64,000 nucleotides of DNA from NCBI GenBank assembly GCA_002104905.1, contig MCFE01000141.1, positions 92,973 through 156,972 of the forward strand. The letters run 5' to 3'. Of the stretch, positions 44,019 through 64,000 are shown in pieces. The notes beneath the pieces are model-generated. The model saw only the letters and a list, made by a program, of their open reading frames with translations. It was not told where the DNA came from and ran no database searches. Within the stretch, counting starts at the first letter, position 1; the number at the start of each line of letters is the position of its first letter. Source of the stretch: Basidiobolus meristosporus CBS 931.73 (Eukaryota; Fungi; Basidiobolomycota). The position numbers and the translations under genes are program-made.

Positions 44019-47000
44019 ATGATGCATTTTGTGCTCAAAATACTTGCCATTGCTGGTGTAGTTACCGCCTATACGATTACTGACAAATGCATTAACCAGT
44101 GTATTAGTACAGTTGGGGACGAATATGTTCCAGGATTCTCATTGGAGCAGGACAGTGATACGTTCAAAGAGAGTCAGTATTATTATTGCGATAAGAGCTT
44201 CCCCGATAACGCAAAGATCAACCAAGATATGACAGACTGTTTTTTGGCGAATTGCAATCCTATGGCAATGATGGATTTCATAATGTTGAAGCCATTAATC
44301 TGCGATATGATTGCAACCACTACAGAAGCACCGACTTCAACAAAAACAATCGAGACAACTGTGGCCACTACTACTACTGCAGTACCAACTACCAGTTCTA
44401 GAACAACGCAACCGCCGTTGACCACAGATGCCTCAACATCTACGGAGATGAGCCAGTCTTCACCTACCACAGACACTGCCGACACCTCGACATCACCATC
44501 GGCCGAGACCACAAACACCGCCTCCCCTACAGAATCAAGTGAGACGGCTACAACCCCTATGCCAACCACAGAAATTACGAACACTTCCACAACAGAGCCA
44601 ACAGAGACGGTTACTCCTAATGAATCTACCGATACTACAACCACTTCAGATCTACCTACTGACTCGGAAACCGTAACTCCGCCAACTACCCATACCACTG
44701 ATGCTCCTACCACAACAACAACTGACGCCACTGACACTCCCACACCCACAGAGTCAAGTGAGACGGTTACCACACCAGAACCAACCACTGAAACTACGGC
44801 CTCCCCCACAGCAACAGGACCAACAGAGACAGTTACTCCAACGGAATCTACTGACGCTACTACTACTTCAGGACCATCCACTGATTCTGAGACTGTCGCT
44901 CCACCAACTACCGGCACTACTGATGCTCCTACCACAACAACAACTGACACCACTGACACTCCCACACCCACAGAGTCAAGTGAGACAGTTACCACACCAG
45001 AACCAACCACTGAATCTACGGGCACGCCCACAACAACAGTCCCAACAGAGACAGTCACTCCTACGGAATCTACCGACACAACTACTACTTCAGAGTCATC
45101 CACGGATTCTGAAACTGTGACTCCACCAACTACCGATTCTACCAATGCTCCAACCACAACATCCACTGACACCACTGACACTACCACACCTACGGAGCCA
45201 AGCGAGACAGTTCCAACCCCCGTACCAACCACCGAAACCACGGCCACCCCCACAACAACAGAACCAACAGAGACAGTCACTCCTACGGAATCTACTGACA
45301 CAACTACTACTTCAGAGTCATTCACGGATTCTGAAACTGTAACTCCACCAACTACCCATTCTACCAATGCTCCAACCACAACATCCACTGACACTGTCAC
45401 ACCCACAGAGCCAAGTGAGACAGTTACCACCCCGGTGCCAACTACAGAAACCACGGACACCCACACAGCAACAGAACCAACAGAGACAGTCACTCCAACG
45501 GAATCTACTGACGCTACTACTACTTCAGGACCATCCACTGATTCTGAGACTGTGGCTCCACCAACTACCGGCACTACTGATGCTCCTACCACAACAACAA
45601 CTGACACCATTGACACTCCCACACCCACAGAGTCAAGTGAGACGGTTACCACACCAGAACCAACCACTGAAACTACGGCCTCCCCCACAGCAACAGGACC
45701 AACAGAGACAGTTACTCCTACGGAATCTACGGACACAACTACTGCTTCAGAGTCATCCACGAATTCTAAAACTGTGACTCCACCAACTACCGATTCTACC
45801 AATGCTCCAACCACAACATCCACTGACACCACTGACACTACCACACCCACAGGATCAAGCGAGACGGTTACCACCCCAGAGCCAACCACTGAAACCACGG
45901 CCACCCCCACAACAACAGAACCAACAGAGACCGTTACTCCTACAGAATCTACTGATGCTACTACTACTTCTGAATTGCCAACTGACTCGGAAACTGTAGC
46001 TCGACCCACTACAGATACTACTGTTGCTCCAACCACAACATCCACTGACACCACTGACACTACCACACCCGCAGGACCAAGCGAGACGGTTACCACCCCA
46101 GAGCCAACCACAGAAACCACGGCCACCCCCACAACAACAGTCCCAACAGAGACAGTTACTCCTACAGAATCTACTGACGCTATTACTACTTCTGAACTGC
46201 CAACTGATTCGGAAACTGTATCATCGCCAACTACCGATACTACTGATGCTCCAACCACAACATCCACTGACACCACTGCCACTGCCACACCCACGGAGCC
46301 AAGTGAGACGGTTACCACCCTAGAGCCAACCATAGAAACCACTGACACCCCCACAGCAACAGGACCAACAGAGACGGTTACTCCTACAGAATCTACTGAC
46401 GCTACTACTACTTCTGAACTGCCAACTGACTCGGAAACTGTATCATCGCCAACTGCCGATACTACTGATGCTCCAACCACAACCTCAATTGACACCACTG
46501 GCACTCCCATACCTACAGAGTCAAGTGAGACGGTTACAACCCCCGTACCAACCACAGAAACCACTGTCACCCTCACAACAACAGGGCCTACAGAGACAGT
46601 TACTCCTACGGAATCTACTGACGCTACTACTACTTCAGAACTACCCACTGACTCAGAAACTGTATCATCGCCAACTACCGATACTACTGATGCTTCAACC
46701 ACAACAACTGGTATCACTAACACCGTCACACCCACAGAGTCTAGTGAGACCTCTACAACCCCAGAACCATCCACCGAAACTACGGACACACCTACAACAA
46801 CAGAGCCAACAGAGACAGCTACTCCTACGGAATCTACTGACGCTACTACTACTTCAGAACTACCCACTGACTCAGAAACTGTAACTTCGCCGACCATCGA
46901 TACTACTGATGCTCCAACCACTACATCAACTGGCATCACTAACACCACCACACCCACAGAGTCTAGTGAGACGGTTACAATCCCAGAACCAACCACAGAA

Positions 47001-50000
47001 ACTACGGATTCCTCCACAGCAACGGAAACAACAGAGACTGTAACTTCTATGGAATCTACGGACACAACTACTGCTTCTGAACTACCAACTGACTCGGAAA
47101 CTGTAATACCGCCAACTACTGACTCTACTATTGCTCCAACCTTTACATCAACTGACACCACTGCTAGTGCCACAGTCACAGAGTCGAGTGAGACGGTTGC
47201 AACCCCTGTACCAACCACTGACACTACGGACACCCCCACAACAATAGAGCCGACAGAGACTGTTTCTTCTGCGGAATCTACTGACGCTTCTACTACTTCA
47301 GAACTACCTACCGATTCAGAAACTGTATCTCTACCAACTACTGATACTACTGATGCTCCAACCACAACAACTGGCACCACTAACACCGCCACACCCACAG
47401 AGTCTAGTGCGACGGTTACAACCCCAGAACCGACCATCGAAACTACGAACACACCCACAACAACTGAACCAACAGAGACAGTGACTTCTATGGAATCTAC
47501 GGACATAACTACCACTTCAGAGCCATCCACTGATTCAGAAACTGTAACTCCGCCAACTACTGACACCACTGTTGCTCCAACCTCTACATCAATTGACACC
47601 ACTAGCACTGCCACAGTCACAGAGTCAAGTGAGACGGCTACCACCCCAGAACCGAGCACAGAAACTACGGACTCCCCCACAGCAACAGAAACAACAGAGA
47701 CCATAACTCCTACCGAGTCTGGGGATGCCACTACCTCTTCGGAATCATTCATTGACTCAGAAACTGTAACCCCGCCAACTACCGATACTACTGATACTCC
47801 AACCACAACAATAAGTGGCACTGCGACGCCTACAGAGCCAAGTGAGACAGCAACAACCCCGGTACCGACTACAGAAACTACGGACACAACTACTGCTTCA
47901 GAATCATCCACCGGTACTACAACTACTTCAGATCTACCTACTGATTCGGAAACCGTAACTCCGCCGACTACCGATACCACTGATGCTCCAACCACCACAT
48001 CAGCCGACACCACTGACCCTGCTACACGTACAGATTCAAGTGAGACGTTTACCACCCCAGAACCGAGCACAGAAACCACGGACGCCCCCACAACAACAGA
48101 GCCAACAGAGACAGTTACTCCAACGGAATCTACGGACACAACTACTACTTCAGAATCATCCACTGATTTTGAAACTGTGACTCCACCAACTACCGCCACG
48201 CCTACCGAATCAAGTGAGACGGGTACAACCCCGGTACCAACCACCGAAACTACGGACACTCCCACACCAACAGAGACCATTACTCCTACGCAATCTACTG
48301 ACACAACTACTACTTCAGGACCATCCACTGATTCTGAGACTGTGGCTCCACCAACTACCGGCACTACTGATGCTCCAACCTCAACATCGGCAGAGACAAC
48401 GAACACTGCAACACCTACAGAGTCAAGTGAGACAGCAACCACGCCGGTACCGACTACAGAAACTACGGACACAACTACTGCTTCAGAATCATCCATTGGT
48501 ACTACAACTACTTCAGATCTACCTACTGATTCGGAAACCGTAACTCCGCCGACTACCGATACCACTGATGCTCCAACCACCACATCAGCTGACACCACTG
48601 ACCCTGCTACACGTACAGAGCCAAGTGAGACAGTCACCACCCCAGAACCAACTACAGAAACCACGGCCACCCCCACAGTAACAGAACCTACAGAGACAGT
48701 TACTCCAACAGAATCTACGGACACAACTACTAGTTCTGAACTACCAACTGACTCGGAAACTGTATCTCCGCCAACTACCGATAGTACTGATGCTCCAACC
48801 ACAACAACAACTGACGCCACTGATACTCCCACATCCACAGAGCCAAGTGAGACGGCTACCACCCCAGAACCAACCACTGTAACTACGGACACCCCCACAA
48901 CGACAGAACCAACAGAGACAGTTACTCCCACGAAATCCACTGACACAACCACTGCTTCAGAGTCATCCACTGATTTAGAAACTGCGACTCCGCCAACTAC
49001 CGATACCACTGATGCTCCTACCACAACAACAACTGACGTCACTGACACACCCACACCCACAGAGTCAAGTGAGACGGTTACCACCCCAGAACCAACCACA
49101 GAAACCACGGCCACCCCCACAGCAACAGAACCTACAGAGACAGTTACTCCTACGGAATCTACGGACACAACTACTAGTTCTGAACTACCAACTGACTCGA
49201 AAACTGTATCTCCGTCAACTACCGATACTACTGATGCTCCAACTACTACATCAACTGACACCACTGCTAGTGCCACAGTCACAGAGTCGAGTGAGACGGT
49301 TACAACCCCTGTACCAACCACTGACAATACGGACACCCCCACAACAATAGAGCCGACAGAGACTGTTAATTCCACGGAATCTACTGACGCTTCTACTACT
49401 TCAGAACTACCTACCGATTCAGAAACTGTATCTCTACCAACTACCGATACTACTGATGCTCCAACCACAACAACTGGCACCACTAACACCGCCACACCCA
49501 CAGAGTCTAGTGAGACGGTTACAACCCCAGAACCGACCATCGAAACTACGAACACACCCACAACAACTGAACCAACAGAGACAGTGACTTCTATGGAATC
49601 TACGGACATAACTACCACTTCAGAGCCATCCACTGATTCAGAAACTGTAACTCCGCCAACTACTGACACCACTGTTGCTCCAACCTTTACATCAACTGAC
49701 ACCACTGCTAGTGCCACAGTCACAGAGTCGAGTGAGACGGTTGCAACCCCTGTACCAACCACTGACACTACGGACACCCCCACAACAACTGAACCGACAG
49801 AGACTGTTTCTTCTGCGGAATCTACTGACGCTTCTACTACTTCAGAACTACCTACCGATTCAGAAACTGTATCTCTACCAACTACCGATACTACTGATGT
49901 TTCAACCACAATATCAACTGACACTGCCACACATACAGGGCCAAGTGAGATGGTCACCACCTCCTTACCAATTACTGAGCCTACGAGCACTTCCAAAGTA

Positions 50001-52571
50001 ACAGCAACTACAGGAACTGTTACTGCTACTGAATCTGTGGACACCACCACTTCTTCAGAACTATCTAGTGACTCTGAAACCGTAACGCCGTCAACTACTG
50101 GTTCGACTGGTGCTCCAACCACATCATCAACAGAGACTATGGTCACTGCCACATCTATGCAACCAAGCGAGACAGTTACCGCACCGGTTCCAACTACAGA
50201 AACTATCGACACTCCTACGACTACGGGCACAACAGAGACTGTCACTCCAACAGACTCTATGGACATCACCACTTCTTTGGAATCATCCACTGATTCAGAA
50301 ACTGTAATTCCGTCAACCACTGACACTATTGATAATCCATCCGCAACATCTACAGAAACAAGCGAAACGGTTACCACCCCGGCGCCAACCGCAGAAACTA
50401 CGGAAACTACCACATCACTGAAGCCAACTACTGATTCAGAGACCACTCTAACTCCGACAAAAACGGATACAGCAACCGAAACCACCGAGATCATCGCATC
50501 AACTGAATCGGCATCAACCACAGTGGACGAAACTACTCAATCTGCTCCTATCACAGTAACCTCGGCATCGACGGGAACCACACTGACTGAGTCAATGGAG
50601 ACTACTGCTACGTCGGTTACTACTACTGGCACTTCAATATCTACTGACACTTCAGGCACAGTCACGACTACTGAGTCCACAGAGATTATAACTACCGATA
50701 TCCCAATATCAACATCAACCGAGACTACAGACACTGCCACACAAACAGATCCAGCTGAGACGGTTCCAGTGCCAACCACAAATACTTCGGATCTATCTGC
50801 ATCGACGGAAACCACGGACACTACTACGCCTACCGAGCCAACGGAGACTACCGTCACATCAGTTCCAACTACCGCTTCAGAAACTGCCCACCCACCACCC
50901 ACAACAGACATTACAGACATTCCAACATCAACAACAGAGACTACAGACACGGCTACACCTATTGAATCTACAGAGACTACCATCAATTCAACATCAACAG
51001 CAACTGTGGACACAATCACACCTGTTGAATCTACCGAGACTACCACTTTACCTTGCACATCAAACACTACTGATAACCCGTCCTCCATAGAAACTGCTAA
51101 CACTAACACACCCACCGATACTGTGACAACCATTATCACGTCAGTGCCTTTACCTGACTCTGAAAGTACTCAAGCTCCATCTACCACAGACACTGCTGGG
51201 AACTCTGTATCGACGGAATGTACGGAGGTTGTGACACCTACAGAGCCAACAGAGGCTAATTCCACAGCATCGCCAACAGTTACTCAACCCCCGCCAAATA
51301 CAGACACTATGGGCACTTCAACATCAACTGAAACTAGAGATACAATGGCGTCCACCACTTCTAAAACTACTGTCACGACAGATAGTCCAGCATCCGAGTC
51401 AATGAATGCCACTACCCCACCAGCGCCAACTAGTAGTTCTGAACCTACTCAGCCTACAACAACAGTGGTTACAAGCGACACCAATACCTCAACAGAAACA
51501 GAGTCAACAGAGGCTACTCAGACTGCTGAAACCACCGGAACAGAAACAATTGGCACACCAGCATCATCTATTGATTCAACAGCTACTCAGTCTGCATCTA
51601 CTCCAGACACCACCAAGACAATAGAGTGCTCGACATATTCATCTGACTCTACTGTTACTGAAGAGAGTTCCAGAACCATAGGAACCGTAGAGAACAGCCA
51701 GACCCCTCAATGCTCCAAAACTACTGATACAGTGGCTACCACAGATATTTTTGAAACGTCGTGTACGACTGGGACTTTCGTAACTGTTTCCACGGACACT
51801 TCTTCGTTCTCGCAGAGTACAAAGACTGTACAATGTACCGATAATACCAAAACTAGTGAGACCTCCAAACACACACAAACCCCAGACTCCACATTCGTCA
51901 CGGTGTCCTCGCAGGCAACCAACCCGACCGGTACTACAGAATCAGCATCAAACACGCTCGAAGTTACCGGCTGCACATCCCAACCCACCGGTACGATGAT
52001 TGCCACATGTACCTTAAAGCCCACGATAACTGCTGATACTCAAAAGCCTTCGGATACGGCTACTATGAAGCCTACAATCACTACTATGACTTCATGTACA
52101 ACCAAGACTACTGCGATCACCGACGCTCAGACAACTGAGTTAACATCAACCGGATGTGTGGATCCTACCGACTCTCCCAAGACAACCGTGGAGTGTGAAA
52201 AGCCCACCACGACTTACAAGCCTTCCGACTCTTTCGCCACTGGGACTCGTACCCCTGCTGAGGGAGGGAAATGCACAGAGACTATTAGCACCACGATTAC
52301 CAGTGTATCTTGTGAAGGGTATAAGTCTACAACATGTAAGCGCCCAACAGCTACGATCACAGTCACATCCATCTTCACTGTAACCGTCACCACCGAGTCC
52401 CTCCCGGAATCCACCGAATCCTCATGTGAGCACGGAGCCTACAAATGTGTCAACTCTGGAGAGACCGGCGAATTCACAATATGCTCTCATGGCAAACTAT
52501 TCAAGCAGAACTGTGCTAGAGGTACAGTCTGCCGAGCATTCCAAGACTCGATCATCTGTGATTGGGCATAA
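44019..52571 (+). CDS. Giant secreted Thr/Ser-rich mucin-like cell-surface protein (2850 aa) with an N-terminal 6-Cys domain and a C-terminal CBM19-like chitin-binding module
   Basis: Single 8.5-kb ORF; hydrophobic signal MMHFVLKILAIAGVVTA; about 2000 aa of Thr-rich repeats; C-terminal CEHGAYKC..GEFTICSHGKLFKQNCARGTVC..ICDW resembles CBM family 19; no hydrophobic GPI tail. Confidence 0.9.
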   Translation: MMHFVLKILAIAGVVTAYTITDKCINQCISTVGDEYVPGFSLEQDSDTFKESQYYYCDKSFPDNAKINQDMTDCFLANCNPMAMMDFIMLKPLICDMIATTTEAPTSTKTIETTVATTTTAVPTTSSRTTQPPLTTDASTSTEMSQSSPTTDTADTSTSPSAETTNTASPTESSETATTPMPTTEITNTSTTEPTETVTPNESTDTTTTSDLPTDSETVTPPTTHTTDAPTTTTTDATDTPTPTESSETVTTPEPTTETTASPTATGPTETVTPTESTDATTTSGPSTDSETVAPPTTGTTDAPTTTTTDTTDTPTPTESSETVTTPEPTTESTGTPTTTVPTETVTPTESTDTTTTSESSTDSETVTPPTTDSTNAPTTTSTDTTDTTTPTEPSETVPTPVPTTETTATPTTTEPTETVTPTESTDTTTTSESFTDSETVTPPTTHSTNAPTTTSTDTVTPTEPSETVTTPVPTTETTDTHTATEPTETVTPTESTDATTTSGPSTDSETVAPPTTGTTDAPTTTTTDTIDTPTPTESSETVTTPEPTTETTASPTATGPTETVTPTESTDTTTASESSTNSKTVTPPTTDSTNAPTTTSTDTTDTTTPTGSSETVTTPEPTTETTATPTTTEPTETVTPTESTDATTTSELPTDSETVARPTTDTTVAPTTTSTDTTDTTTPAGPSETVTTPEPTTETTATPTTTVPTETVTPTESTDAITTSELPTDSETVSSPTTDTTDAPTTTSTDTTATATPTEPSETVTTLEPTIETTDTPTATGPTETVTPTESTDATTTSELPTDSETVSSPTADTTDAPTTTSIDTTGTPIPTESSETVTTPVPTTETTVTLTTTGPTETVTPTESTDATTTSELPTDSETVSSPTTDTTDASTTTTGITNTVTPTESSETSTTPEPSTETTDTPTTTEPTETATPTESTDATTTSELPTDSETVTSPTIDTTDAPTTTSTGITNTTTPTESSETVTIPEPTTETTDSSTATETTETVTSMESTDTTTASELPTDSETVIPPTTDSTIAPTFTSTDTTASATVTESSETVATPVPTTDTTDTPTTIEPTETVSSAESTDASTTSELPTDSETVSLPTTDTTDAPTTTTGTTNTATPTESSATVTTPEPTIETTNTPTTTEPTETVTSMESTDITTTSEPSTDSETVTPPTTDTTVAPTSTSIDTTSTATVTESSETATTPEPSTETTDSPTATETTETITPTESGDATTSSESFIDSETVTPPTTDTTDTPTTTISGTATPTEPSETATTPVPTTETTDTTTASESSTGTTTTSDLPTDSETVTPPTTDTTDAPTTTSADTTDPATRTDSSETFTTPEPSTETTDAPTTTEPTETVTPTESTDTTTTSESSTDFETVTPPTTATPTESSETGTTPVPTTETTDTPTPTETITPTQSTDTTTTSGPSTDSETVAPPTTGTTDAPTSTSAETTNTATPTESSETATTPVPTTETTDTTTASESSIGTTTTSDLPTDSETVTPPTTDTTDAPTTTSADTTDPATRTEPSETVTTPEPTTETTATPTVTEPTETVTPTESTDTTTSSELPTDSETVSPPTTDSTDAPTTTTTDATDTPTSTEPSETATTPEPTTVTTDTPTTTEPTETVTPTKSTDTTTASESSTDLETATPPTTDTTDAPTTTTTDVTDTPTPTESSETVTTPEPTTETTATPTATEPTETVTPTESTDTTTSSELPTDSKTVSPSTTDTTDAPTTTSTDTTASATVTESSETVTTPVPTTDNTDTPTTIEPTETVNSTESTDASTTSELPTDSETVSLPTTDTTDAPTTTTGTTNTATPTESSETVTTPEPTIETTNTPTTTEPTETVTSMESTDITTTSEPSTDSETVTPPTTDTTVAPTFTSTDTTASATVTESSETVATPVPTTDTTDTPTTTEPTETVSSAESTDASTTSELPTDSETVSLPTTDTTDVSTTISTDTATHTGPSEMVTTSLPITEPTSTSKVTATTGTVTATESVDTTTSSELSSDSETVTPSTTGSTGAPTTSSTETMVTATSMQPSETVTAPVPTTETIDTPTTTGTTETVTPTDSMDITTSLESSTDSETVIPSTTDTIDNPSATSTETSETVTTPAPTAETTETTTSLKPTTDSETTLTPTKTDTATETTEIIASTESASTTVDETTQSAPITVTSASTGTTLTESMETTATSVTTTGTSISTDTSGTVTTTESTEIITTDIPISTSTETTDTATQTDPAETVPVPTTNTSDLSASTETTDTTTPTEPTETTVTSVPTTASETAHPPPTTDITDIPTSTTETTDTATPIESTETTINSTSTATVDTITPVESTETTTLPCTSNTTDNPSSIETANTNTPTDTVTTIITSVPLPDSESTQAPSTTDTAGNSVSTECTEVVTPTEPTEANSTASPTVTQPPPNTDTMGTSTSTETRDTMASTTSKTTVTTDSPASESMNATTPPAPTSSSEPTQPTTTVVTSDTNTSTETESTEATQTAETTGTETIGTPASSIDSTATQSASTPDTTKTIECSTYSSDSTVTEESSRTIGTVENSQTPQCSKTTDTVATTDIFETSCTTGTFVTVSTDTSSFSQSTKTVQCTDNTKTSETSKHTQTPDSTFVTVSSQATNPTGTTESASNTLEVTGCTSQPTGTMIATCTLKPTITADTQKPSDTATMKPTITTMTSCTTKTTAITDAQTTELTSTGCVDPTDSPKTTVECEKPTTTYKPSDSFATGTRTPAEGGKCTETISTTITSVSCEGYKSTTCKRPTATITVTSIFTVTVTTESLPESTESSCEHGAYKCVNSGETGEFTICSHGKLFKQNCARGTVCRAFQDSIICDWA
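44500..50400 (+). repeat. Intragenic tandem repeats with a basic unit of 222 bp (74 aa), plus shortened variants and higher-order duplications
   Basis: atgctcctaccacaac at 44701 and 44923; gagtcaagtgagac at 44751 and 44973; near-identical blocks at 47148-47583 and 49251-49686. Confidence 0.9.
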
Positions 52572-55500: not shown

Positions 55501-55761
55501 AGCTAAGCCTGTTCGACATGAATATTGTCGATTTGCCCAAACCAAACAACCTTCTTGCTTAATAATCCTAGCCTTTGATGCTGTTTGGCCCGGCTCTTTG
55601 AAGTAGCAGATTATCCTACCACTCATTGACCATGTCAGTTTCAGCTAACAAGAAGCCTTTCTCCCAAGGGATTTGTCAATTCTATATATACAGGTCTAAA
55701 CACGCACAGTGTTCTTCAGTTTTTACCACGTCCCTTCTGAAACCGTAGAATCTTGATCCAA

Positions 55762-57441
55762 ATGCTTAGGTTACTAGCTTTATTTCACTCAATACTGGTG
55801 CTCTTTCCTGGAACAACGCAGGCTTCTCCAATAGTGAAGAGGCAGGATTTTTCTGACAACACCGCCATCCTACTGCAAGGGGGAACGTTTATTACCTATA
55901 ATGAGACAACAGCTTCTCTCGAGGTAATTAATGGTTCTATGCTAATCATTAATGACACGATAGTCGAAATTGGAGCCAATCTCCCAAATCTCCCACCCCA
56001 CATCGAAATCGTCAACGTTACTGGCCGAATTATCACTCCCGGGTTCGTTGATACTCATCGTCATGGTTGGCAGACTGCGTTCCGCACACAGGGGGAAGAT
56101 CTCACTTTGGGCCGATATTTCTACACATTTGCTAATTTTGGTGCAGCTGCGCAAATATTCGATGCAGAAGACGTCTACATAGGACAGCTCATGGGCTTGT
56201 ACGAGGCCATCGATGCTGGTGTGACCAGTATCGTAGATCACGCACACCACACCTGGTCAAAAGAAACGGCTCAGGCGGGGCTTCAAGCATCTATTGATAG
56301 TGGAAATCGGGTTTGGTGGTGCTACGCAGTTCAACCCGTGCCTATTCAGAGCGACCCGTATGTATTGGACAAAAATACTACATCGTGGCAACTAGCTCAG
56401 ATTGCAGAAATGGTCACCAACAGGCCCTTGACCGGTGATCGAGTGAATATCGGCCTCGCGTATGATCAGTTGAACCTTCCGGAGGAGGAGGTTGCCAGCA
56501 TATTCGAGTTCGTCAAGTAAGATATCACAGAATGCCCCCTCGTGGTTCACCCAATAACTCGTATTCACAGAAAGCAAAATCTGTCGCTCATCACAACCCA
56601 CTACCTAGGGGGAGTATTTCAAGGTATGTTATAGTTCCCTGACGCCAAATAGTTCACTATGTTTACACACACGCGCTTGCTAGGCGAGTTTCATTCGATC
56701 GAAGTGCTAGACAAATACAGGCTGCTGGATATCGACACTCCTATTATTGTCTCTCATGCCTCATATATCACGCCGCAGGAAATAGAACTTCTTCGAAAGG
56801 CCAACCAGTATATATCCATCACCTCGGAATCAGAGATGCATTATGGCCATGGACATCCATATAGCTACAGTATTCAGGACCAGGGGTCCCTCGGGATAGA
56901 TACACACTTTACTTTCTCCTCTGATATTATCACCCAGATGAGAATGAACATGCAAACCACCAGGCTCACCATGTACAAAATGACTATTGAGCAAGGCCAT
57001 TTGCCGTCAAATACCGGTATGACCGTCAACCAAGCCTTTTTGATGGGGACTAGGAATGGTGGGCTTGCACTGAGAAGGGACGATATCGGCGTCTTGAAGG
57101 TCGGTGCGAAAGCTGACATAGTAGTCTTCGATACCAATCGACCAGGCCTGTTGGGATGGAAGGATGCTGTCGCCGCCATTGTATTGCACGCGAACACTGG
57201 GGATATCGAGCATGTTATAGTGGACGGAAAATTTCGAAAGAGAGACAGGAGACTGGTTGATGTTGATTGGATCACTTCTCAGGACCGCTTCCTGCGCAGT
57301 GCCGCTAAGATCTCAACCGCAATGGGAAAGGTTAACTTTGCAGCAATAAAGGATGGCGTTTTTGGACAAGTTCTTGGATATACTGACAGCCTTTTTGCAA
57401 AGACCCCCGAGGTGAACGTTACACGTGGCCCTTCTACTTGA
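55762..57441 (+). CDS. Metal-dependent amidohydrolase (TRZ/ATZ deaminase-like), predicted secreted; exons 55762-56516, 56571-56623, 56684-57441 (521 aa)
   Basis: ITPGFVDTHRH (HxH), AGVTSIVDH, SESEMHYGHG, LGIDT, G.L.VGAKADIVV; N-terminal signal peptide and KR site; two GT-AG introns of 54 and 60 nt keep the frame. Confidence 0.9.
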
Positions 57442-57945
57442 TGCTCTATCATTATCTGCGAATTCAATGCTTCATGTAAATCATTATTGTTAATTAAAAA
57501 GATCCTTGTGTCAGAATATTTAGCCATCCATGTCATAGTATGGCATGGACATGACCAAGCAGACCGTAATTAGCATTGATGCAAGCAGTTAGTGGGATCC
57601 GGAAAGGGCTGTTATTTAATTTAGAATATTGTCAAATTTTAAAAAGTGGTTCTTATGGCGTGAATATAAATCATCACCGGAATTCTAATTATCTACACTG
57701 AGGATGAATAATAAGTACCAGAGGTTAACCGTAATCGTAATATTGTGAATCCGCACGCATTACATATGGGCCGGTGTAGCAATACCAAGTGCGAGTAGTG
57801 AGTTTATAGCACATGGCGTTTATTCAGGAAGGGGTAAGGGGTGACTAGTTTTATGCTATTTTAACAAATGCGCGAACAAACCTTCCAAGCATATACACTT
57901 GCAGGCACTGGAACTGAGGCTTGATGCGTAAGCTGTCAATTAGAT

Positions 57946-58187
57946 TTAGGGGAGGAAAAGTCACCAAGTTGGTGAAATTTTTATGTGCTTTTAAGAACTA
58001 ATCGAAGTACAAACAAAGAAGCCAATTAAGAGGTAGAGAACCTCTCTAATAAGTAATCTAATTATGCTTTGATTCATGTCCAATTATGGTGTCAATAAAA
58101 TAAAGTTCATCAGGTGTAAATATGCAAATAATAACCTTAAGTAAGTCCTAAGATGCAATCCCCCATGCAACTCCCATATTCTTTAGT
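57946..58187 (-). mobile_element. Telomeric array unit U1: 242-bp 3'-end remnant of a non-LTR element
   Basis: TTAGGGG-AGGAAAAGTCACCAAGTTGGTGAAATTTTTAT junction motif and downstream AAAGAAGCCA, shared with U2-U5. Confidence 0.75.
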
Positions 58188-59171
58188 TTAGGGGGAGGGA
58201 AAGTCACCAAGGTAGGTGAAATCTTTATTTGATTTCAGACAAGTCTAACTACAAATAAAGAAGCCAGCTGGGAATAGAAGATTCCCAAAGTAAACACTAA
58301 GTTGAATATGAATAAATCTAAGCTAAAGTTAAGGCAGTATCCCAGTGTACACTGGAGTTCAGGTTCATGGGGGAGTGAAGTAGATAAGCTTGAGAGATAT
58401 AATAATCTTTTAGGAAGTGGGTAACAGCAGGTGAAGGGGAGTTTTTGATAAGTGAAGTAAATCTGGAGAGCAGAGATTCCCTTAATGAGAAGGTCTCATA
58501 AACTGGAGAATCAGGAAACTCTTTAAAGGCATGGTCAGTAGGTTCCCAGAAAAACTGATCAGAGATATTTTGAGAGAATTGTTTAGCAATACTTTTGTCA
58601 AGTACTACCTCCACAATGTGATGGTTGATAAATCTCATGTTAACAATCTTGGATAAATTATAACCTTGTTGCTTGAGATACATCCTATGCTCAGATATAG
58701 GAATAAGCTCCACATTGGCAAAGTAGCAGACAGCCCAGTCAGTAGCAGGAGGCAAATCAGAAGTGGCAGGAAACTTTCTTTTAGTCTTGGGAGGAGCAGC
58801 AGGGTGTCTTGAGGAAGCACGAACAGACTTTTTGACAGTTTCAGAGTAGGAAGAGTGAGCAGGAGCAGATGGTACTTGTGGAGTCTTGTTGACAGGAAGA
58901 GTTTGCACAGGGACAATAGATTCTTGCAGATCAGAGAAGGCAGAAAACAGCTTTTGAACTTGTTTATTAAGTAGAGCATTTTCAGCTTCAACAAGTGCAA
59001 GCCTTTCTTCAAGGAAAGAAATCTGAAGGGAATGGAGTGAAGGCATAAGATATAAGAAAAGAGGGTAGGATGGGGAGGGTGGGTGGGAATGTTAGCAGGG
59101 AGATGAGAAGGAAGGAGCAAAAATTCAAGAAGTCAGAATTTATAGATGGATGGACAAGGGTAGATGGAGAG
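58188..59171 (-). mobile_element. Telomeric array unit U2: 984-bp ORF1-only non-autonomous element
   Basis: Same 3' motif; intact ORF1 followed directly by a ~130-bp 3' UTR; no ORF2 sequence. Confidence 0.85.
58318..59046 (-). CDS. ORF1 (Gag-like nucleic-acid chaperone) of U2, 242 aa: N-terminal coiled coil plus RRM-like domain
   Basis: Uninterrupted ATG ORF; LPPATDWAVCYF..PIS..R..L....LSKIVN.....IVEVVLD aligns with U5 ORF1 LPPASTWTVVYL..PIS..R..L....LSRIVN.....ILEVILD. Confidence 0.85.
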   Translation of the reverse strand: MPSLHSLQISFLEERLALVEAENALLNKQVQKLFSAFSDLQESIVPVQTLPVNKTPQVPSAPAHSSYSETVKKSVRASSRHPAAPPKTKRKFPATSDLPPATDWAVCYFANVELIPISEHRMYLKQQGYNLSKIVNMRFINHHIVEVVLDKSIAKQFSQNISDQFFWEPTDHAFKEFPDSPVYETFSLRESLLSRFTSLIKNSPSPAVTHFLKDYYISQAYLLHSPMNLNSSVHWDTALTLA

Positions 59172-59530
59172 TTAGGGGGGAGGAAAGTCACCAAGTGGTG
59201 AAATCTTTATTTACTTATGACAAGTATTTAAAGTAGCCAATTTAATCTGAAGTAATACCTAGTAAGCTAGGTCTGAGAGATATCTTCCTGGTAAGCCAGG
59301 TCTGAGAGTTGAGAAGCTGAGTGGTACTGTATTTCCTAGTTAGCTAGGTCTGAGAGATATCTTCCTGGTAAGCCAGGTCTGAGAGTTGAGAAGCTGAGTG
59401 GTACTGTATTTCCTAGTTAGCTAGGTCTGAGAGAGGTTTCCTGAAAAGCCAGGCCTGAGAAGTGAAAATCTGAGTATATCTGAGGTCAGTTGTACTTGTT
59501 TGCGGTAGCTGAATTGTGGCTGTTGTGGCC
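59172..59530 (-). mobile_element. Telomeric array unit U3: 359-bp non-coding 3'-end unit with internal tandem repeats
   Basis: GTTAGGGGGG-AGGAAAGTCACCAAGTGGTGAAATCTTTATT junction motif. Confidence 0.78.
59265..59460. repeat. 77-bp tandem repeat, about 2.5 copies
   Basis: agctaggtctgagaga starts at 59265, 59342 and 59419; the first two copies are identical. Confidence 0.92.
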
Positions 59531-60146
59531 AGGGTTGGGGGGGGGAGACAGTCACAAACAGGTGAAATCTTTATTCTGGTTGAAACAAAGAAGCTAGCAC
59601 TACTGTTGTGGCTTTGATACAAGAGTGTGTAGCTGAGGGGAATTTGTAGGTAAGCTTACAAGAAGTGATGATAGTTCTTCAGTGCTCAAGACACTGTTCA
59701 GTGGGAAGGGGGGTAGCAAGAGGGGTAAGAATGATTTGTGAACAACATTAATGAGGGGAACATGATATGGATTGATATTCATCATAAAGGGAGTGTGCTG
59801 CTGCAGATATTGCTGCCAAAGGTCTGTCAAGTACTTCAGGTAGGCCAGTTTGGGTTTTTCTGACTGCAGAATATAGTGAGCAAACTTCTTGACTTCAGGA
59901 TCTCCAAGTATAGTTCTCCAGCAGGAGCCAGGTGTAGTGTGGTGTGTTCTCTTCCAGGCCTTGACTAGTGGGCTGTTGAGTGGTGAAGTATGAGATATAA
60001 TCTGGTTCTGAGGTAGAATAGTCTGATCTTGTAGGGCATAAAACCAAAAGCACCAAGAATAGCATGTCTGTAGGGGCATTCAGGCAGATGAGGCACCAGA
60101 GATGTAATGCACCAGACTGCAAACTTGTCAAGTTTAGTGCAGTCTC
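59531..60146 (-). mobile_element. Telomeric array unit U4: heavily 5'-truncated copy (ORF2 C-terminus plus 3' UTR) of the autonomous LINE
   Basis: Colinear with 60152-60755 of U5, with substitutions and a 1-nt deletion; junction AGGGTTGGGGGGGGG-AGACAGTCAC. Confidence 0.92.
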
Positions 60147-60214
60147 TAGGGTTAGGGGGGAGACAGTCACCAACAGGTGAAATCTTTATTTCAGTTGAAA
60201 CAAAGAAGCCAGCG

Positions 60215-62983
60215 CTACTGTTGTAGCTTTGATACAAGAGTGTGTAGCTGAGGGGAATTTGTAGGTAAGTTAATAAGAAGTGATGATAGTTCTTCAGTGC
60301 TAAACACACTGTTCAGTGGGAAGGGGGGTAGCAAGAGAGGTAAGAATGACTTGTGAACAACATTAATGAGGGGAATGTGATAAGGATTGATATTCATCAT
60401 AAAGGGGGTGTGCTGCTGCAGATATTGCTGCCAAAGGTCTGTCAAGTACTTCAGGTAGGCCAGCTTGGGTTTTTCTGACTGCAGAATATAGTGAGCAAAC
60501 TTCTTGACTTCAGGATCTCCAAGTATAGTTCTCCAGCAGGAGCCAGGTGTTGTGTGGTGTGTTCTCTTCCAGGCCTTAATCAGTGGGTTGTTGCAGTTGT
60601 GAAGTCTGAGGTATAATCTGGTTCTAAGGTAGAGAAGTCTGATCTTATAGGGCATAAACCCAAAAGCACCAAGAATAGCATGTCTGTAGGGGCATTCAGG
60701 CATATGAGGCACCAAGGAGGTAATGCACCATACTGCAAACTTGTCAAGCTTAGTGCAGTCTCTAGAAGTAAGAGAGAGAAGTGGTAAGCCAAATTCCAGG
60801 ACAGGGAAGACAAACTGCTTGAGTAGAAGGAGGCAGCTTGGAGCTGAAGTTGTAGGAGGAGTAACAGCCAGTAGCTTGTGGAGTGCCTGTCTTGCCAGGA
60901 TAATTCTCTTCTTCAGGTGTGCTCCAGAGTCTAGTCCAGTAGGAAGGAAAGGAAAGCCAAGATATGTAGCAGAAACCTGAGCAGGTAGAGTGGAGTTCTC
61001 CAAGTTGATGGGAGAGCCCAAAGGTACTGTCTTTGCAATGGAAAGCTGGAGATTATTCTTCTGCAGATACTGGTGGATGGTCTGGGAGTCTTGTTGCACA
61101 TTGGAGGAGGATATTCTGATGTCATCAGCAAAGAGAGTAACCAGGCAGTCAGCTGAGAGTCTTGGGAAATCATTCAGGAAGATGGCAAACAGTATAGGAC
61201 CAAGCACAGAGCCTTGAACCACTCCATTAGGAACTGAGAACACAGCTGATTGCTCACTTGGGTGCAGAATTCTTGCTTGTGGATCCAGAAACAGAGACCT
61301 GACAAGGAGGGTGAGAGAGGTATTGGAGAAGCATTGCAACTTGGACCAAAGCAGATTTCTGTCAACTGAATCAAAGGCCTTAGTAATATCAAACAGTACT
61401 GAGGGATACTTGCACTGGAGAGAGTGATCTTGGCTAAGTATGACTGCATATTCCAAGGAGAGGCCAGGAACAAAGCCAAACTGTGCAGGATGAAACTTGA
61501 GGGAGTCAGAGTAGAGCTCCTGAGCAAGCAGAAGCTCAAACACCTTTCTGCAGGTGGGCAGCAGAGATATTGGCCTGTAGGAGCTAGGATCCAGGTGCTT
61601 TCCTTTACCCTTGTACAGTGGCAGAACATTTGCAAAGGACCATTCCTCAGGAGTAGAAAGCTGGGCTGAGCATTGCTGAAACAGTGGAAGCAGAAGTGCA
61701 GACATGGCCTTGGTACTAGTCTTCAGAAGCTCATAAGAGATTGTGTCCACACCTGGAGCAGTAGAGTTGGGAAGCCTCTTGAGCACATTATGGATTCTCC
61801 TTTGATCAAGTGCAAGTGGGATGGGCAGAGTCTTGAAGTCAGGATGAAAGCCAGGAGTTGAGTACTGCTTTGTAGAGAAGAAGATGTTAGCCAGCTGTTC
61901 TGTTGAAGGTAACTTCCTGGAAGAGGGCCTCATTGCCCTGTAGAGTCTTGATACTGTTCTTGTTATAGAGTTGGAAGATTGCAGAGGCAAAGAACTCATA
62001 ATATGATCCCAGAGCTGAGTATGCAGAGTGTGGTGAATTGCCTTGGAGTGGTGTATTGCTGTCAGGAGGAGTTTCTCTGTTTTTGGGTTAGGGAAACTCA
62101 GGTAGCTTTGTTGCAGGGCTGAAACAATAGATTCCCATTTTCTTGAGGTAACAGCAGTAGTCTTGCATGGCAGTGAGAGGGAGGCAGACACCAGAATCAG
62201 ATGCTTCACAAAGAGCCAGGCATAGTTGAGATCATCTGGCAGAGAAAGTAGCAAACTGGCAAGCTTCAAGTAGTTCCCAAAGTCTTTCTTCTGAGTCTTG
62301 GTAGCTTTGTGGGTGAGCACAGTAAGTTTTGGCAGCTTCTTCTTCACAACTGGTTCCATAGAAAGGGACCAGGCTGGGTGGTCAGAGGCTCTCAAGGATC
62401 CTAACTCAGCTCCAGAGAATTGCTTAACTTCATTCACAAAGTAGAGGGCAGCAGCAGAAGGGCAGATCCAGTCAACACATCTTTTCTCAGATTGAGCACC
62501 TAGTGCTAGCAGGTGGCTTTCTCTCAGGAAGTTCAGTAGGAATGTAGACCTTGGCTTCATTCTTGCAGTCAGAGTAGTCTTGTTCTCAGGATGGGGAATG
62601 TTGAGATCTCCAAGCAAGATAACAGGTGTTGATATAGATTGCTGGTATTGCTGAACCTTCTGGCATATAACTTGCACTTCCTGAAGGGCAAGACTTGGAG
62701 GCAGATAGCAGAGCACCAGACTGATAGTTGGCAACTGGAGAGCAGCACAGTAAGGGGAGTAAAGAGGAACACAGAGCTGAGGAGTATTGATGGTAGAAGA
62801 GATGAAGCAGATAGAGGAGGTATTCTTTGTTCTAGGAGTAGAAAAGCAATATAGATTAGTCAAAAGTATAGAAGGTAGCTGAACATCAATCAAACACAGG
62901 AGGGAAAATCTTGAAAGAAGTCTCTCTAGAGTTGGTCTTGATGGCTGTATGCTGTTGCAGTTAAGCAACAGAACTACAGGTAG
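60215..62983 (-). CDS. LINE ORF2: APE endonuclease plus reverse transcriptase (922 codons, no initiating AUG)
   Basis: EN motifs LNCN, YLPP, LGDLN, VDW, SDH; RT motifs APGVDTI, YRPISLL, QFGF, FDITKAFDSV, GVVQGSVLGPILF, FADD, YLG; no stops; no C-terminal CCHC or RNase H recognised. Confidence 0.95.
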   Translation of the reverse strand, partial: LPVVLLLNCNSIQPSRPTLERLLSRFSLLCLIDVQLPSILLTNLYCFSTPRTKNTSSICFISSTINTPQLCVPLYSPYCAALQLPTISLVLCYLPPSLALQEVQVICQKVQQYQQSISTPVILLGDLNIPHPENKTTLTARMKPRSTFLLNFLRESHLLALGAQSEKRCVDWICPSAAALYFVNEVKQFSGAELGSLRASDHPAWSLSMEPVVKKKLPKLTVLTHKATKTQKKDFGNYLKLASLLLSLPDDLNYAWLFVKHLILVSASLSLPCKTTAVTSRKWESIVSALQQSYLSFPNPKTEKLLLTAIHHSKAIHHTLHTQLWDHIMSSLPLQSSNSITRTVSRLYRAMRPSSRKLPSTEQLANIFFSTKQYSTPGFHPDFKTLPIPLALDQRRIHNVLKRLPNSTAPGVDTISYELLKTSTKAMSALLLPLFQQCSAQLSTPEEWSFANVLPLYKGKGKHLDPSSYRPISLLPTCRKVFELLLAQELYSDSLKFHPAQFGFVPGLSLEYAVILSQDHSLQCKYPSVLFDITKAFDSVDRNLLWSKLQCFSNTSLTLLVRSLFLDPQARILHPSEQSAVFSVPNGVVQGSVLGPILFAIFLNDFPRLSADCLVTLFADDIRISSSNVQQDSQTIHQYLQKNNLQLSIAKTVPLGSPINLENSTLPAQVSATYLGFPFLPTGLDSGAHLKKRIILARQALHKLLAVTPPTTSAPSCLLLLKQFVFPVLEFGLPLLSLTSRDCTKLDKFAVWCITSLVPHMPECPYRHAILGAFGFMPYKIRLLYLRTRLYLRLHNCNNPLIKAWKRTHHTTPGSCWRTILGDPEVKKFAHYILQSEKPKLAYLKYLTDLWQQYLQQHTPFMMNINPYHIPLINVVHKSFLPLLLPPFPLNSVFSTEELSSLLINLPTNSPQLHTLVSKLQQ

Positions 62984-63803
62984 TCAGGCAGAGGTTGTAG
63001 CTTCTTCAGAGGCAGCATTGATAATGTGACCTGCAGAGTCCCAGAGCTCTTCAAATGGTGCATCACTTAAGTCAGCAAGGAGGGAAATGGCATGGTTCTT
63101 GAGGAAGTATGCCACATCATAGGAGGGGGCTTGTCTCTTGATGGCAGCAAAGAAAGACAGAATGGCAACATGCGCTGGAGGCTTGTTGAACAGTAGAGAG
63201 TAGAGGATTCAGATTCTTCAGGCACTATCTTGAAGTCAGTTTCAGCCAGTTAAGGTTCTTCTCCACAAAGGCAACAAATGGGTCAGCAATGTTTTGGTCT
63301 AGGATAACCTCCAGAATCTTCCCTTTTCTCCAGGCCAGGTTGACAATTCTTGAGAGCTGAATATTGCATGCCTTGAGTGCTTTCCTGATGTTGGAAATGG
63401 GAGTCCAGGGAACTTGCTTCAAGTACACCACAGTCCAGGTAGAAGCTGGTGGTAGGTTTGCTGGGGGCTTGTAAGTCCTTCTGTGTTGCAATGGAGCTGC
63501 AGTAGTCAGATTGGAGTCCACATTCTCAGTAGAAGGTTTTCTTGATGTGTCTTGCTGAATAGTACTGGAGCTGGATGTGCTGATAATTCTTGCTAGAACC
63601 TTGCCTGCATAAGTCTGAGGTATAGCTGAGGTGACTGTAGAGGTGTTGGCAGCTGGTGCAGGTGGAGAGGCAGAAACTGAAGCAGGAACTGAGGTCACCT
63701 GGGAGAAGGCAGTGGAAGCAGGTTTTCTGGGAGGAACAGAGTTCACTATCCAGTTGTTCTGTAAAGCACTGGAGTAGCTTTTCTGTGGAACAGGATCTTG
63801 CTC
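62984..63803 (-). pseudogene. ORF1 of U5: N-terminally truncated, with two apparent single-base deletions (~63243 and ~63200)
   Basis: Three frames joined in sequence reproduce the U2 ORF1 alignment to its C-terminus (YFLKNHAIS..WDSA vs HFLKDYYIS..WDTA). Confidence 0.78.
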
Positions 63804-64000
63804 TTAGGGTTTAGGGTTAGGGTTAGGGTTAGGGTTAGGGTTAGGGTTAGGGTTAGGGTTAGGGTTAGGGTTAGGGTTAGGGTTAGGGTTAGGGTTAGGG
63901 TTAGGGTTAGGGTTAGGGTTAGGGTTAGGGTTAGGGTTAGGGTTAGGGTTAGGGTTAGGGTTAGGGTTAGGGTTAGGGTTAGGGTTAGGGTTAGGGTTAG
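63804..64000 (+). repeat. Telomere (TTAGGG)n, about 32 repeats to the window end; the second repeat is the variant TTTAGGG
   Basis: Direct reading; G-rich strand oriented toward the window end. Confidence 0.99.

Follow-up and report, generated by a model that had tools for sequence, protein, structure and literature searches.

The terminal ~6 kb of a Basidiobolus contig is a unidirectional stack of five retroelement units, and we think it likely that the contig stops at a genuine chromosome end, to whose terminus non-LTR retroelements, coexisting with telomerase, have repeatedly been added. Genome-wide, these elements sit almost only at chromosome ends, and because they are nearly confined there they look like a second end-building system beside telomerase. 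Few lineages are known to have telomere-specific retrotransposons, and each such case is taken as a clue to the relationship between telomerase and retroelements.

Architecture of the terminal array

Allowing at most one mismatch, GGTGAAATYTTTAT occurs in the window (the whole 64-kb stretch of DNA that was analysed) at 57971, 58215, 59197, 59561 and 60176, always on the + strand, and nowhere else, against an expectation of 0.08 occurrences from shuffles. Upstream of each copy are GTCAC(C/A)AA, a short purine spacer, 4-9 G and 3-11 telomere-like bases, and the units start at 57946, 58188, 59172, 59531 and 60147. Coding sense lies on the minus strand throughout the stack, so the 3' ends of the units point inward and their 5' ends point toward the contig end. 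The array is closed by a telomere tract (63804..64000, + strand) of (TTAGGG)32.7, detected with Tandem Repeats Finder, which runs for 197 bp to the contig end and overlaps the outermost unit's truncated 5' end by 2 nt (TT). The anatomy and polarity of the stack, and the families that compose it, were thus observed directly.

An earlier note on this DNA had described five 3' signatures of one polarity, capped by (TTAGGG)n, with the 3' motif most decayed in the innermost unit and a complete ORF2 only in the outermost. All of these features were recovered, with the correction that the outermost copy is not itself intact. Its description of five stacked, end-facing retroelements also stands, with the qualification that the units represent four families rather than five copies of one LINE, because ORF1-only and non-coding elements are among them.

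The innermost unit, U1 (57946..58187, - strand), is a 242-bp 3' fragment of the fourth family, has the loop variant AAC and adjoins unique DNA ~500 bp past the last gene. Its tag (57960-57984) is decayed and is the most altered of the five, with the fold of hairpin 1 lost. The next unit, U2 (58188..59171, - strand), is an ORF1-only element of 984 bp that has the shared tag in its 3' untranslated region (UTR) and no ORF2. Its ORF is complete (58318-59046, 242 aa), is flanked by a 5' leader of ~125 nt and a 3' UTR of ~130 nt, and is 35% identical over 142 aa to the ORF1 of the autonomous LINE, family A (E 5e-21). This element has at least 150 genomic matches, and the ORF is open in most of the full-length ones.

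U3 (59172..59530, - strand) is non-coding and SINE-like. It is a 5'-truncated copy of a ~525-bp element, lacking the first ~250 nt by alignment to a full copy (L031:8010-8545), and it has one additional 77-bp internal repeat (tandem repeat 59258-59475). The 3' tag of this element is held in common with the LINE. ARAGORN and Rfam detected no tRNA in the full copy, in which a B-box-like GGTTCAAATCC is the sole head-like feature visible; the copy in the window has no head. A 5S-like identity for the ~120-bp tandem repeat past the L031 stack was considered and rejected, as it matched nothing in Rfam.

Family A is a LINE with a predicted APE-type endonuclease

The two outer units belong to family A. 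U4 (59531..60146, - strand) is an older copy represented by the 616-bp 3' end of the LINE, and U5 (60147..63805, - strand) is 5'-truncated and retains 3659 of ~4350 bp; the full-length reference copy is L031:3632-7993. ORF2 of U5 is open (60215-62968, 917 aa). The element is cut at 63805 within ORF1, the remnant of which (62972-63805) is missing the first ~163 codons and contains two 1-nt deletions, after 63201 and after 63239. The ORF1 stop and the start of the endonuclease domain lie in the same frame (62969..62986, - strand), as UGA and then CUA with no AUG. The same-frame UGA-CUA/CUC arrangement is found in four lineages, and we infer that ORF2 is probably made by UGA read-through.

The reverse transcriptase (RT) domain of ORF2 is of non-LTR type (Pfam RVT_1, E 3.6e-25; score 89 bits, cut-off 29.6), and its closest solved structures are those of human LINE-1 ORF2p (E 7e-13). 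Database matches to the RT are unnamed, at most 31% identical and limited to the RT core. Look-alikes in the Atlas are annotated only as APE+RT, and a Pfam scan gave no family match in the C-terminal 240 aa. ORF1 has neither a CCHC motif nor a Pfam family above cut-off. Its C-terminal domain is modelled (pLDDT 77.8) as a beta-alpha-beta-beta-alpha unit with additional helices, for which only weak fold matches (RRM and other ferredoxin-like) and no significant ones were obtained. A profile search with this domain against 1.84 billion representatives returned only 22 proteins, and no Pfam family was present in the ten of these that were scanned. In the Atlas the domain falls in unnamed fungal clusters, and the ORF1 relatives that are named come from Basidiobolus ranarum. 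The abundance of telomeric contigs had raised the possibility of a ciliate or trypanosome source, which was discarded in view of these relatives.

The earlier note had also called the endonuclease APE-type. The match of ORF2 to Exo_endo_phos_2 is weak (E 3.5e-4, below cut-off), and the endonuclease region matched no PDB sequence at E up to 10. Despite this, the AlphaFold model of the region (pLDDT 82.6) matches ExoIII/APE1, L1 EN and TRAS1 EN with a Foldseek probability of 1.0 (target-normalised TM-score, TMt, of 0.66 for TRAS1 EN, 1wdu), and the catalytic residues Y88, D121, N123, D166 and H197 are invariant in 29 sequences. The assignment is therefore supported by fold match and catalytic residues, at the level of a structural model: the family A endonuclease is N-terminal and has a predicted APE fold, and its enzyme activity is untested.

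Genomic location and polarity

A 29-base family A tag occurs 640 times in the genome, 601 times forward and 39 times in reverse. We placed 100 of these 640 sites; exact matching favours young copies. For each of the first 100 listed, the contig end toward which the 5' end points is no more than 18.2 kb away, at a median distance of 3.7 kb. Among them are 38 tags on 24 contigs longer than 100 kb, every one of which is near the faced end and none of which is interior. Seventeen of the 20 such contig ends that were checked finish in TTAGGG repeats. Matches to ORF2 behave similarly, with 49 of the 50 best facing the nearer contig end; the exception (C781, locus L017) points away from a telomere 10 kb off. 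Reverse-facing tags on three short contigs were not resolved. For the first 100 tags and the best 50 ORF2 copies, then, the chromosome-end location and single polarity that had been proposed hold, and this end-restricted distribution is a direct observation.

A shared 3' tag with a telomere-complementary tail

Alignment of the families and hairpin predictions define a shared 3' RNA tag, the U5 version of which lies at 60147..60222 (- strand). On the RNA strand it consists of hairpin 1, which includes AAUAAA, hairpin 2 (UCACC-loop-GGUGA), a C run and then UAACCCUA. The same module is found in the other units, also on the - strand, at 57946-58030, 58188-58275, 59172-59250 and 59531-59606. Both hairpins are predicted independently for each family, except that hairpin 1 does not fold in U1; the inner stem columns align unreliably from one family to another. 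Conservation of both tag and tail was seen directly in 63%-identical relatives from other samples. All 67 tags end, on the RNA strand, in a C run followed by 3-29 bases that complement the G strand of the telomere, and a poly(A) or A-rich tail is present in none of the 67.

The number of telomere-like bases at these 67 junctions has modes at 6, 8 and 11-12, and many tails directly adjoin non-telomeric DNA, either truncated elements or unique sequence. Terminal telomere tracts, by comparison, are 150-216 bp long. The observed junction tracts are far below this length, and random cutting inside a long tract is therefore disfavoured, as the earlier note had argued. The same note had taken the one or two telomere units at each junction to be remnants of brief telomerase capping, and here we differ: a tail carried by the RNA is more likely than a remnant of an eroded telomere. 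Because the junction tracts are short and the relatives carry an identical tail, the telomere-like tail probably belongs to the element RNA, where it would pair with the G strand of worn ends; this inference is drawn from sequence and there are no RNA data. A few junctions have 16-29 telomere-like bases, exceeding a fixed tail of 11-12 nt, and these count against an RNA-borne tail.

The best-surviving alternative, which we nevertheless consider unlikely, is site-specific insertion of the Bombyx TRAS/SART kind, in which the APE domain nicks the TTAGGG strand within double-stranded repeats and reverse transcription starts from that nick. Proximal tracts would then be short either because cutting is favoured near the tract base or because internal repeats are lost afterwards. 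Such nicking would fit the retention of the APE fold and catalytic residues across lineages in which the endonuclease region is only 42-55% identical, an orientation that matches TRAS, the few junctions on 16-29 bases of telomere repeat, and the telomere repeats that flank the outermost copies on both sides. However, random nicking should give a broad spread of tract lengths, and no junction among the 67 exceeds 29 telomere-like bases; where tails adjoin truncated elements or unique DNA there is no repeat to cut; poly(A) is absent; and in each of the four lineages compared, Asp replaces the metal-binding Glu of the usual 'ET' motif.

Order of addition and the origin of the array

Repeated terminal addition, the reading that we prefer, was examined further through the divergence of the units from their family mates. 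From inside to outside, identity is 86% (U1, against mates in L008 and L028), 94% (U2), 93% (U3), 94% (U4, which is 93.6% identical to U5 positions 9-619 and has a median of 93.7% to 38 other copies) and 99% (U5, which is 98-100% identical to at least 50 other ORF2 copies genome-wide). Age thus increases inward and the youngest unit is outermost, a direct observation that bears out the stepwise addition inferred previously. The 5' ends of family A copies, which have no terminal repeats, are varied and include, on the 3659-base reference, 2857, 2899, 2942, 3036, 3095, 3229, 3270, 3282, 3288, 3352, 3387 and 3410. Their upstream partners are many different sequences, and in short-read contigs dozens of different sequence joints fall at 60147-60158. 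The truncated 5' ends carry long telomere tracts as caps, which begin with an overlap of 1-2 nt.

Some junctions do recur across contigs. A junction between the 5' end of the SINE-like element and a tail of family A is present in L012, L013, L017 and L023, and the same 2856/2857 truncation point is present in L007 and L027, so whole-end duplication may account for part of the copy number. These identical junction contexts would also be expected of ordinary dispersed LINEs that survive in a subtelomeric safe haven and are multiplied by recombination or break-induced copying between ends. We find that explanation very improbable given the uniform polarity, the lack of any interior tag on the long contigs, the diversity of truncation points and partners, the telomere-complementary tail kept in distant relatives and the inward rise in age. 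An assembly artefact, in which a high-copy repeat has collapsed or been mis-joined at the contig end, can hardly be entertained: although the elements are extremely repeated (summed short-read-contig depth), several contigs break within elements and the DNA runs containing the stretch come only from the assembly's own sample, a 267-base short-read contig equals 57949-58215 exactly and so covers U1 and reaches 28 bases beyond the U1/U2 joint at 58188, divergence from family mates is graded, unlike in a collapse, and the same architecture is found on dozens of contigs that end in telomere repeats.

A model for repeated terminal addition

We propose that the autonomous family A LINE would supply ORF1 and the APE endonuclease/RT ORF2 both for itself and for three non-autonomous riders with the same tag, namely the ORF1-only element, the SINE-like element that codes for nothing and one or more additional families. 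The hairpins of the tag would let the LINE enzyme pick out element RNAs; this mobilisation of the riders in trans is inferred. Beyond the two hairpins and the C run, the tag would offer 1-2 units complementary to the telomere G strand, and this CCCUAA-like tail could pair with the 3' terminus of the G-rich strand, or be copied straight onto it, at a chromosome end stripped of most or all of its repeats. Priming from the G-strand 3' OH is likewise an inference and not a demonstrated step. The cDNA would then extend the chromosome with the 3' end of the element inward and its 5' end outward, and the new, often 5'-truncated end would be capped by telomerase or take the next element. A conserved-looking endonuclease is not required by end-priming alone, and this counts against the model.

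A system of this kind would unite features that have been seen separately: an APE-type LINE, a telomere-complementary tail and a HeT-A-like Gag-only partner. Telomerase is still in use in the fungal host, whose hundreds of assembled chromosome ends amount to a large natural set of replicates for end healing. The fungus can also be cultured, so that it lends itself to asking if telomerase is backed up by retroelements and by what means a LINE enzyme chooses the end of a chromosome.

Comparison with known systems

The MoTeR, FoTeR and Cnl1 elements are REL-type and belong to a CRE/SLACS-like clade (PMC12857005). Like the Basidiobolus elements they are fungal non-LTR elements confined to chromosome ends with their 5' ends facing the telomere, but they use a restriction-like endonuclease, whereas family A has an N-terminal APE domain, a different ORF1 and a telomere-complementary tail. 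Athena and Coprina, both Penelope-like elements, are terminally located and end in short telomeric repeats in reverse complement, for which pairing with exposed G-rich overhangs has been suggested, an ability that has been called unique to endonuclease-deficient Penelope-like elements (PMC8557442). On family criteria, the telomere-complementary tail is the only feature that they have in common with the Basidiobolus elements. They have a Penelope-like RT, no endonuclease and hammerhead ribozyme motifs, in contrast to a LINE with an N-terminal APE domain, an ORF1 and a two-hairpin tag. We found no paper on an APE-type, telomere-tailed set of LINEs in fungi, and likewise none for Basidiobolus. 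With MoTeR being REL-type and Coprina Penelope-like, the suggestion that a fungal APE-type telomeric LINE may be undescribed remains tenable.

TRAS and SART are R1-clade elements with a poly(A) 3' end, and their insertion site is fixed and lies within long tracts of telomere repeats. The Basidiobolus elements resemble TRAS1/SART1 in their APE-type endonuclease (fold match to 1wdu), the coexistence of telomerase repeats and the TRAS-like orientation, but differ in their junction tracts of 3-29 bases and their telomere-like tails, many of which adjoin non-telomeric DNA. Eel UnaL2/UnaSINE1 is a stringent-type LINE/SINE pair with short repeat tails, and Waldo and Mino are microsatellite-targeting R1-clade LINEs. 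The likeness to stringent pairs lies in a conserved 3' stem-loop common to the LINE and its partners and in a short repeat tail that matches the target; what they target, however, is dispersed or microsatellite sites rather than the ends of chromosomes.

HeT-A, TART and TAHRE of Drosophila share with the Basidiobolus elements head-to-tail terminal arrays with 3' ends inward, 5' ends outward and variable 5' truncation, an autonomous APE+RT LINE accompanied by a Gag/ORF1-only partner (here U2), and a strand-biased base composition in which the G-rich strand coincides with the G strand of the telomere (across 57,500-64,000 the GC skew is +0.17 to +0.59). The differences are that Basidiobolus ends keep telomerase repeats (150-216 bp of TTAGGG) and have not replaced them, that the junctions carry telomere-complementary tails rather than oligo(A), and that the set includes a non-coding rider, an ORF1 without zinc knuckles and a fungal host. 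More tentatively, it is possible that telomerase and a three-tier guild of APE LINE, HeT-A-like ORF1-only element and non-coding rider jointly maintain the very many chromosome ends of Basidiobolus. The LINE enzyme would in that case act like telomerase on uncapped ends, because the RNAs carry their own primer-binding tail. Joint maintenance of this kind would amount to the Drosophila solution reached independently and still at an intermediate stage, and would represent convergence with endonuclease-less Penelope-like elements from within the LINE class.

Five tagged units stacked against a telomere

The five tagged units under a (TTAGGG)n cap described in the earlier note are borne out both by the sequence of 57,000-64,000 and by a motif count. 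The core motif GGTGAAATYTTTAT has five sites in the whole 64-kb window (57971, 58215, 59197, 59561 and 60176), all on the + strand; shuffles give an expectation of 0.08. Immediately 5' of each site are 3-11 telomere-like bases, 4-9 G, a purine spacer and GTCAC(C/A)AA, and the window ends on the right in 32.7 TTAGGG units (63804-64000). Every long ORF in the stack is on the minus strand, so in each unit the 3' end points inward and the 5' end faces the contig end; with the five + strand tags, this upholds the single polarity proposed previously.

The units do share a 3' signature, as had been claimed, but they belong to four families, which include an ORF1-only and a non-coding element. The outermost unit, U5 (60147-63805), is a copy of the autonomous LINE, family A, and has a 917-aa ORF matching RVT_1 (E 3.6e-25) and, weakly, Exo_endo_phos_2. 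U5 is 5'-truncated, because other copies extend beyond window position 63805; a full-length copy (L031:3632-7993) spans ~4.35 kb and encodes a 438-aa ORF1 and a 917-aa ORF2. In U5 the ORF1 remnant has also lost two single bases, after 63201 and after 63239. U4 (59531-60146) comprises the final 616 bases of family A at 93.6% identity, and U3 (59172-59530) is the 3' portion of a non-coding element of roughly 525 bp, for which a tRNA-type head was not confirmed. U2 (58188-59171) contains a complete 242-aa ORF homologous to ORF1 of family A (35% identity over 142 aa, E 5e-21) and laid out in the same way, with a coiled-coil region and a C-terminal domain; no ORF2 follows, and the tag comes ~130 nt past the stop. 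The presence of an ORF1 homologue and absence of ORF2 identify U2 as an ORF1-only element of ~1 kb, which has at least 150 matches genome-wide (566 candidates), the full-length ones mostly open. The innermost unit, U1 (57946-58187), is a fragment of a fourth family at 86% identity.

Identity to family mates rises from the inside to the outside of the stack (86, 94, 93, 94 and 99%), and the same trend is seen in short-read contigs, where private differences are many in U2 and few in U5. Thus, the stack was built by successive additions at its tip, and the gradient agrees with the successive rounds of retrotransposition that had been envisaged.

GC skew is +0.17 to +0.59 over 57500-64000, the G-rich strand being the one with the telomeric G strand; a similar asymmetry between strands has been reported for telomeric retrotransposons elsewhere (PMC10088271). 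Inward of the stack, the nearest gene belongs to the amidohydrolase family and takes the form of two exon-like ORFs (55753-57441, +); it ends ~500 bp from the first unit, leaving almost no subtelomeric buffer. Further inward, a 2850-aa ORF (44019-52571, +) consists of ~25 copies of a 222-bp unit rich in codons for Thr, Pro and Glu; it looks mucin-like and is strongly strand-skewed, and a long spurious ORF runs antisense to it.

A common 3' tag with a telomere-complementary tail

When each family is folded separately, two hairpins are predicted, followed by the C run and the tail. Hairpin 1 includes AAUAAA and hairpin 2 is UCACC-loop-GGUGA; in the first stem, family A and the ORF1-only family differ by a C-G to G-C exchange and a G-U to A-U change, without a formal covariation count. 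Because the autonomous LINE shares its tag with riders of three kinds (ORF1-only, SINE-like and a further family), a classic sign of trans-mobilisation, we infer that one reverse transcriptase mobilises them all.

We measured the perfect telomere-like stretch that precedes the G run at 67 tags, drawn from the window plus 30 loci: its length is 3-29 bases (modes 6, 8 and 11-12), whereas terminal TTAGGG tracts measure 150-216 bp. What lies upstream of a tag differs: it can be unique AT-rich sequence, the non-coding element with a full-length 5' end, or a member of any family broken off at one of many different truncation points. Short-read contigs supply dozens more joints, all landing at 60147-60158. 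In five other sequencing samples, relatives at 63% ORF2 identity also carry the hairpin tag and C run, with 9-13 bases complementary to the telomere, and there too another element comes after tag and tail. Since the tail is bounded in length, accompanies the element from lineage to lineage and adjoins non-telomeric DNA, it is most simply read, from sequence alone, as part of the RNA template. The 'remnant TTAGGG' of the earlier note is therefore probably, at most junctions, the elements' own tail; the few tracts of 16-29 bases show that some additions took place on real, short repeat tracts. At terminal truncated 5' ends, long telomere tracts begin at 1-2 bases of overlap, a hallmark of telomerase healing.

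The most likely mechanism is the copying of tagged RNAs onto repeat-depleted ends. Tag-bearing RNAs would be copied onto chromosome ends that lack their repeats, the tail either pairing with the G-strand 3' end or being copied directly behind it, and the newly made end would then be capped by telomerase or joined by another element. The main rival is that the APE domain nicks inside telomere repeats, as in TRAS; this is hard to square with the junctions, none of which has a long proximal tract.

Two more sequence types lie on the outer flank of LINE copies after 2-4 telomere units and lack the two-hairpin tag (L007:4287-4380, L014:4720-4810; L020:4842-4930, L031:8770-8850). One type opens with TTCTAGTGCTTTATTGGG, the second with TGTAGGTGTTATAGTAAGGGCTAG; both may represent extra end-attached families with different 3' ends. 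A ~120-bp tandem repeat, with no family in Rfam, lies beyond the LINE stack at L031:9400-10000 and L062 (right end of C733) and ends some contigs; at L024 a family A copy is joined directly to it.

Genomic distribution of family A

Identity is 98-100% for the best 50 genomic ORF2 matches, of which 44 are uninterrupted. On the 31 contigs of this set with known length or end, ORF2 copies lie 0.6-8 kb from the contig end faced by their 5' end, bar one on contig C781. In the 89.5-Mb assembly, the exact 29-base family A tag has 601 forward and 39 reverse occurrences. We placed the first 100 of these 640 sites, which are not selected by position because they are listed in contig order: all 100 are within 18.2 kb of the end that they face (median 3.7 kb), as are the 38 among them on 24 contigs >100 kb. 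Under uniform placement, at a roughly estimated ~0.1 per contig, the joint probability of this result is negligible. The sample covers family A only, and exact tags favour young copies. As explanations of the stack, passive accumulation of elements at ends and assembly error are both unlikely.

The expected end location and polarity thus hold in the genome-wide sample, apart from a few exceptions. In C781:54971-60721 (locus L017), a family A copy and a SINE-like unit face away from a telomere 10 kb to the right. This inverted stack, the sole exception among the best 50 ORF2 matches, may be what remains of a chromosome end that was inverted or fused. Further exceptions, which are unresolved, are the reverse-facing tags of three short contigs.

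Contig orientation in the assembly is non-random, probably through assembler habit. The family A tag is mostly forward (601 against 39), and of the contig ends checked (L032-L129), 17 of 20 right ends finish in TTAGGG repeats, against 0 of 78 left ends, so few or no contigs run from telomere to telomere.

Endonuclease, reverse transcriptase and ORF1

A sequence search of the endonuclease region against solved structures found nothing, the region being too diverged. Its AlphaFold model, based on 29 sequences (pLDDT 82.6), matches ExoIII/APE1, L1 EN and TRAS1 EN with a Foldseek probability of 1.0. Tyr88, Asp121, Asn123, Asp166 and His197 are invariant, an LNxN motif is present at the N-terminus, and Asp replaces the usual metal-binding Glu in all four lineages compared. 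Fold match and invariant residues together make the domain APE-type, as first supposed; it appears conserved, although its activity and target are not established. The best solved relative of the reverse transcriptase is human LINE-1 ORF2p, and database relatives outside the family reach at most 31% identity. ORF1 has very few relatives: 22 proteins turned up among 1.84 billion representatives, and a word search returned 6 clusters, one named Basidiobolus ranarum.

ORF1 stops at UGA followed by CUA, or CUC in one lineage (window 62969-62986, minus strand; also L031, L130, L131 and L136). ORF2 lies in the same frame without an AUG, the endonuclease motif LLLNCNS coming 6-7 codons past the stop. 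The recurrence of this arrangement in four lineages with 48-63% ORF2 identity suggests a putative ORF1-ORF2 fusion by stop-codon read-through, a reading drawn from the sequences only. In one related lineage, ORF1 has an N-terminal Cys-rich extension (CPNCGG...CKC; L131:1169-1360) that is absent from the window's family.

More distant ORF1 relatives come from unrelated samples (L137:1-115, L138-L140 and L141:1-112; profile E 1e-23 to 7e-9). Each is followed by a further ORF, shown to contain APE and RT in L138 and APE in L137. In one, (CCCTAA)n directly precedes the 5' end; one family forms head-to-tail arrays with (ATCC)n tails; and one has five 21-bp 5' repeats, each containing CCCTAA. The clade may extend beyond Basidiobolus and may often be associated with ends.

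Comparison with known telomeric retroelements

Literature searches for Basidiobolus with telomere or retrotransposon found nothing relevant. Within the literature searched, a fungal guild built around an APE-type LINE, with telomere-complementary tails, is undescribed; the earlier note had suspected as much for an APE-type telomeric LINE family in a fungus. A 2023 survey of telomere-associated retroelements covers SART/TRAS, GilM/GilT, Zepp, MoTeR, Tx1-1_ACar, Athena and the Drosophila trio (PMC10088271). MoTeR, FoTeR and Cnl1 have been grouped together in a CRE/SLACS-like clade with a restriction-like endonuclease (PMC12857005), and reverse-complement telomeric tails have been described as an ability that only the endonuclease-less Athena and Coprina elements possess (PMC8557442). 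The ORF1-only element U2 is comparable in its logic to HeT-A.
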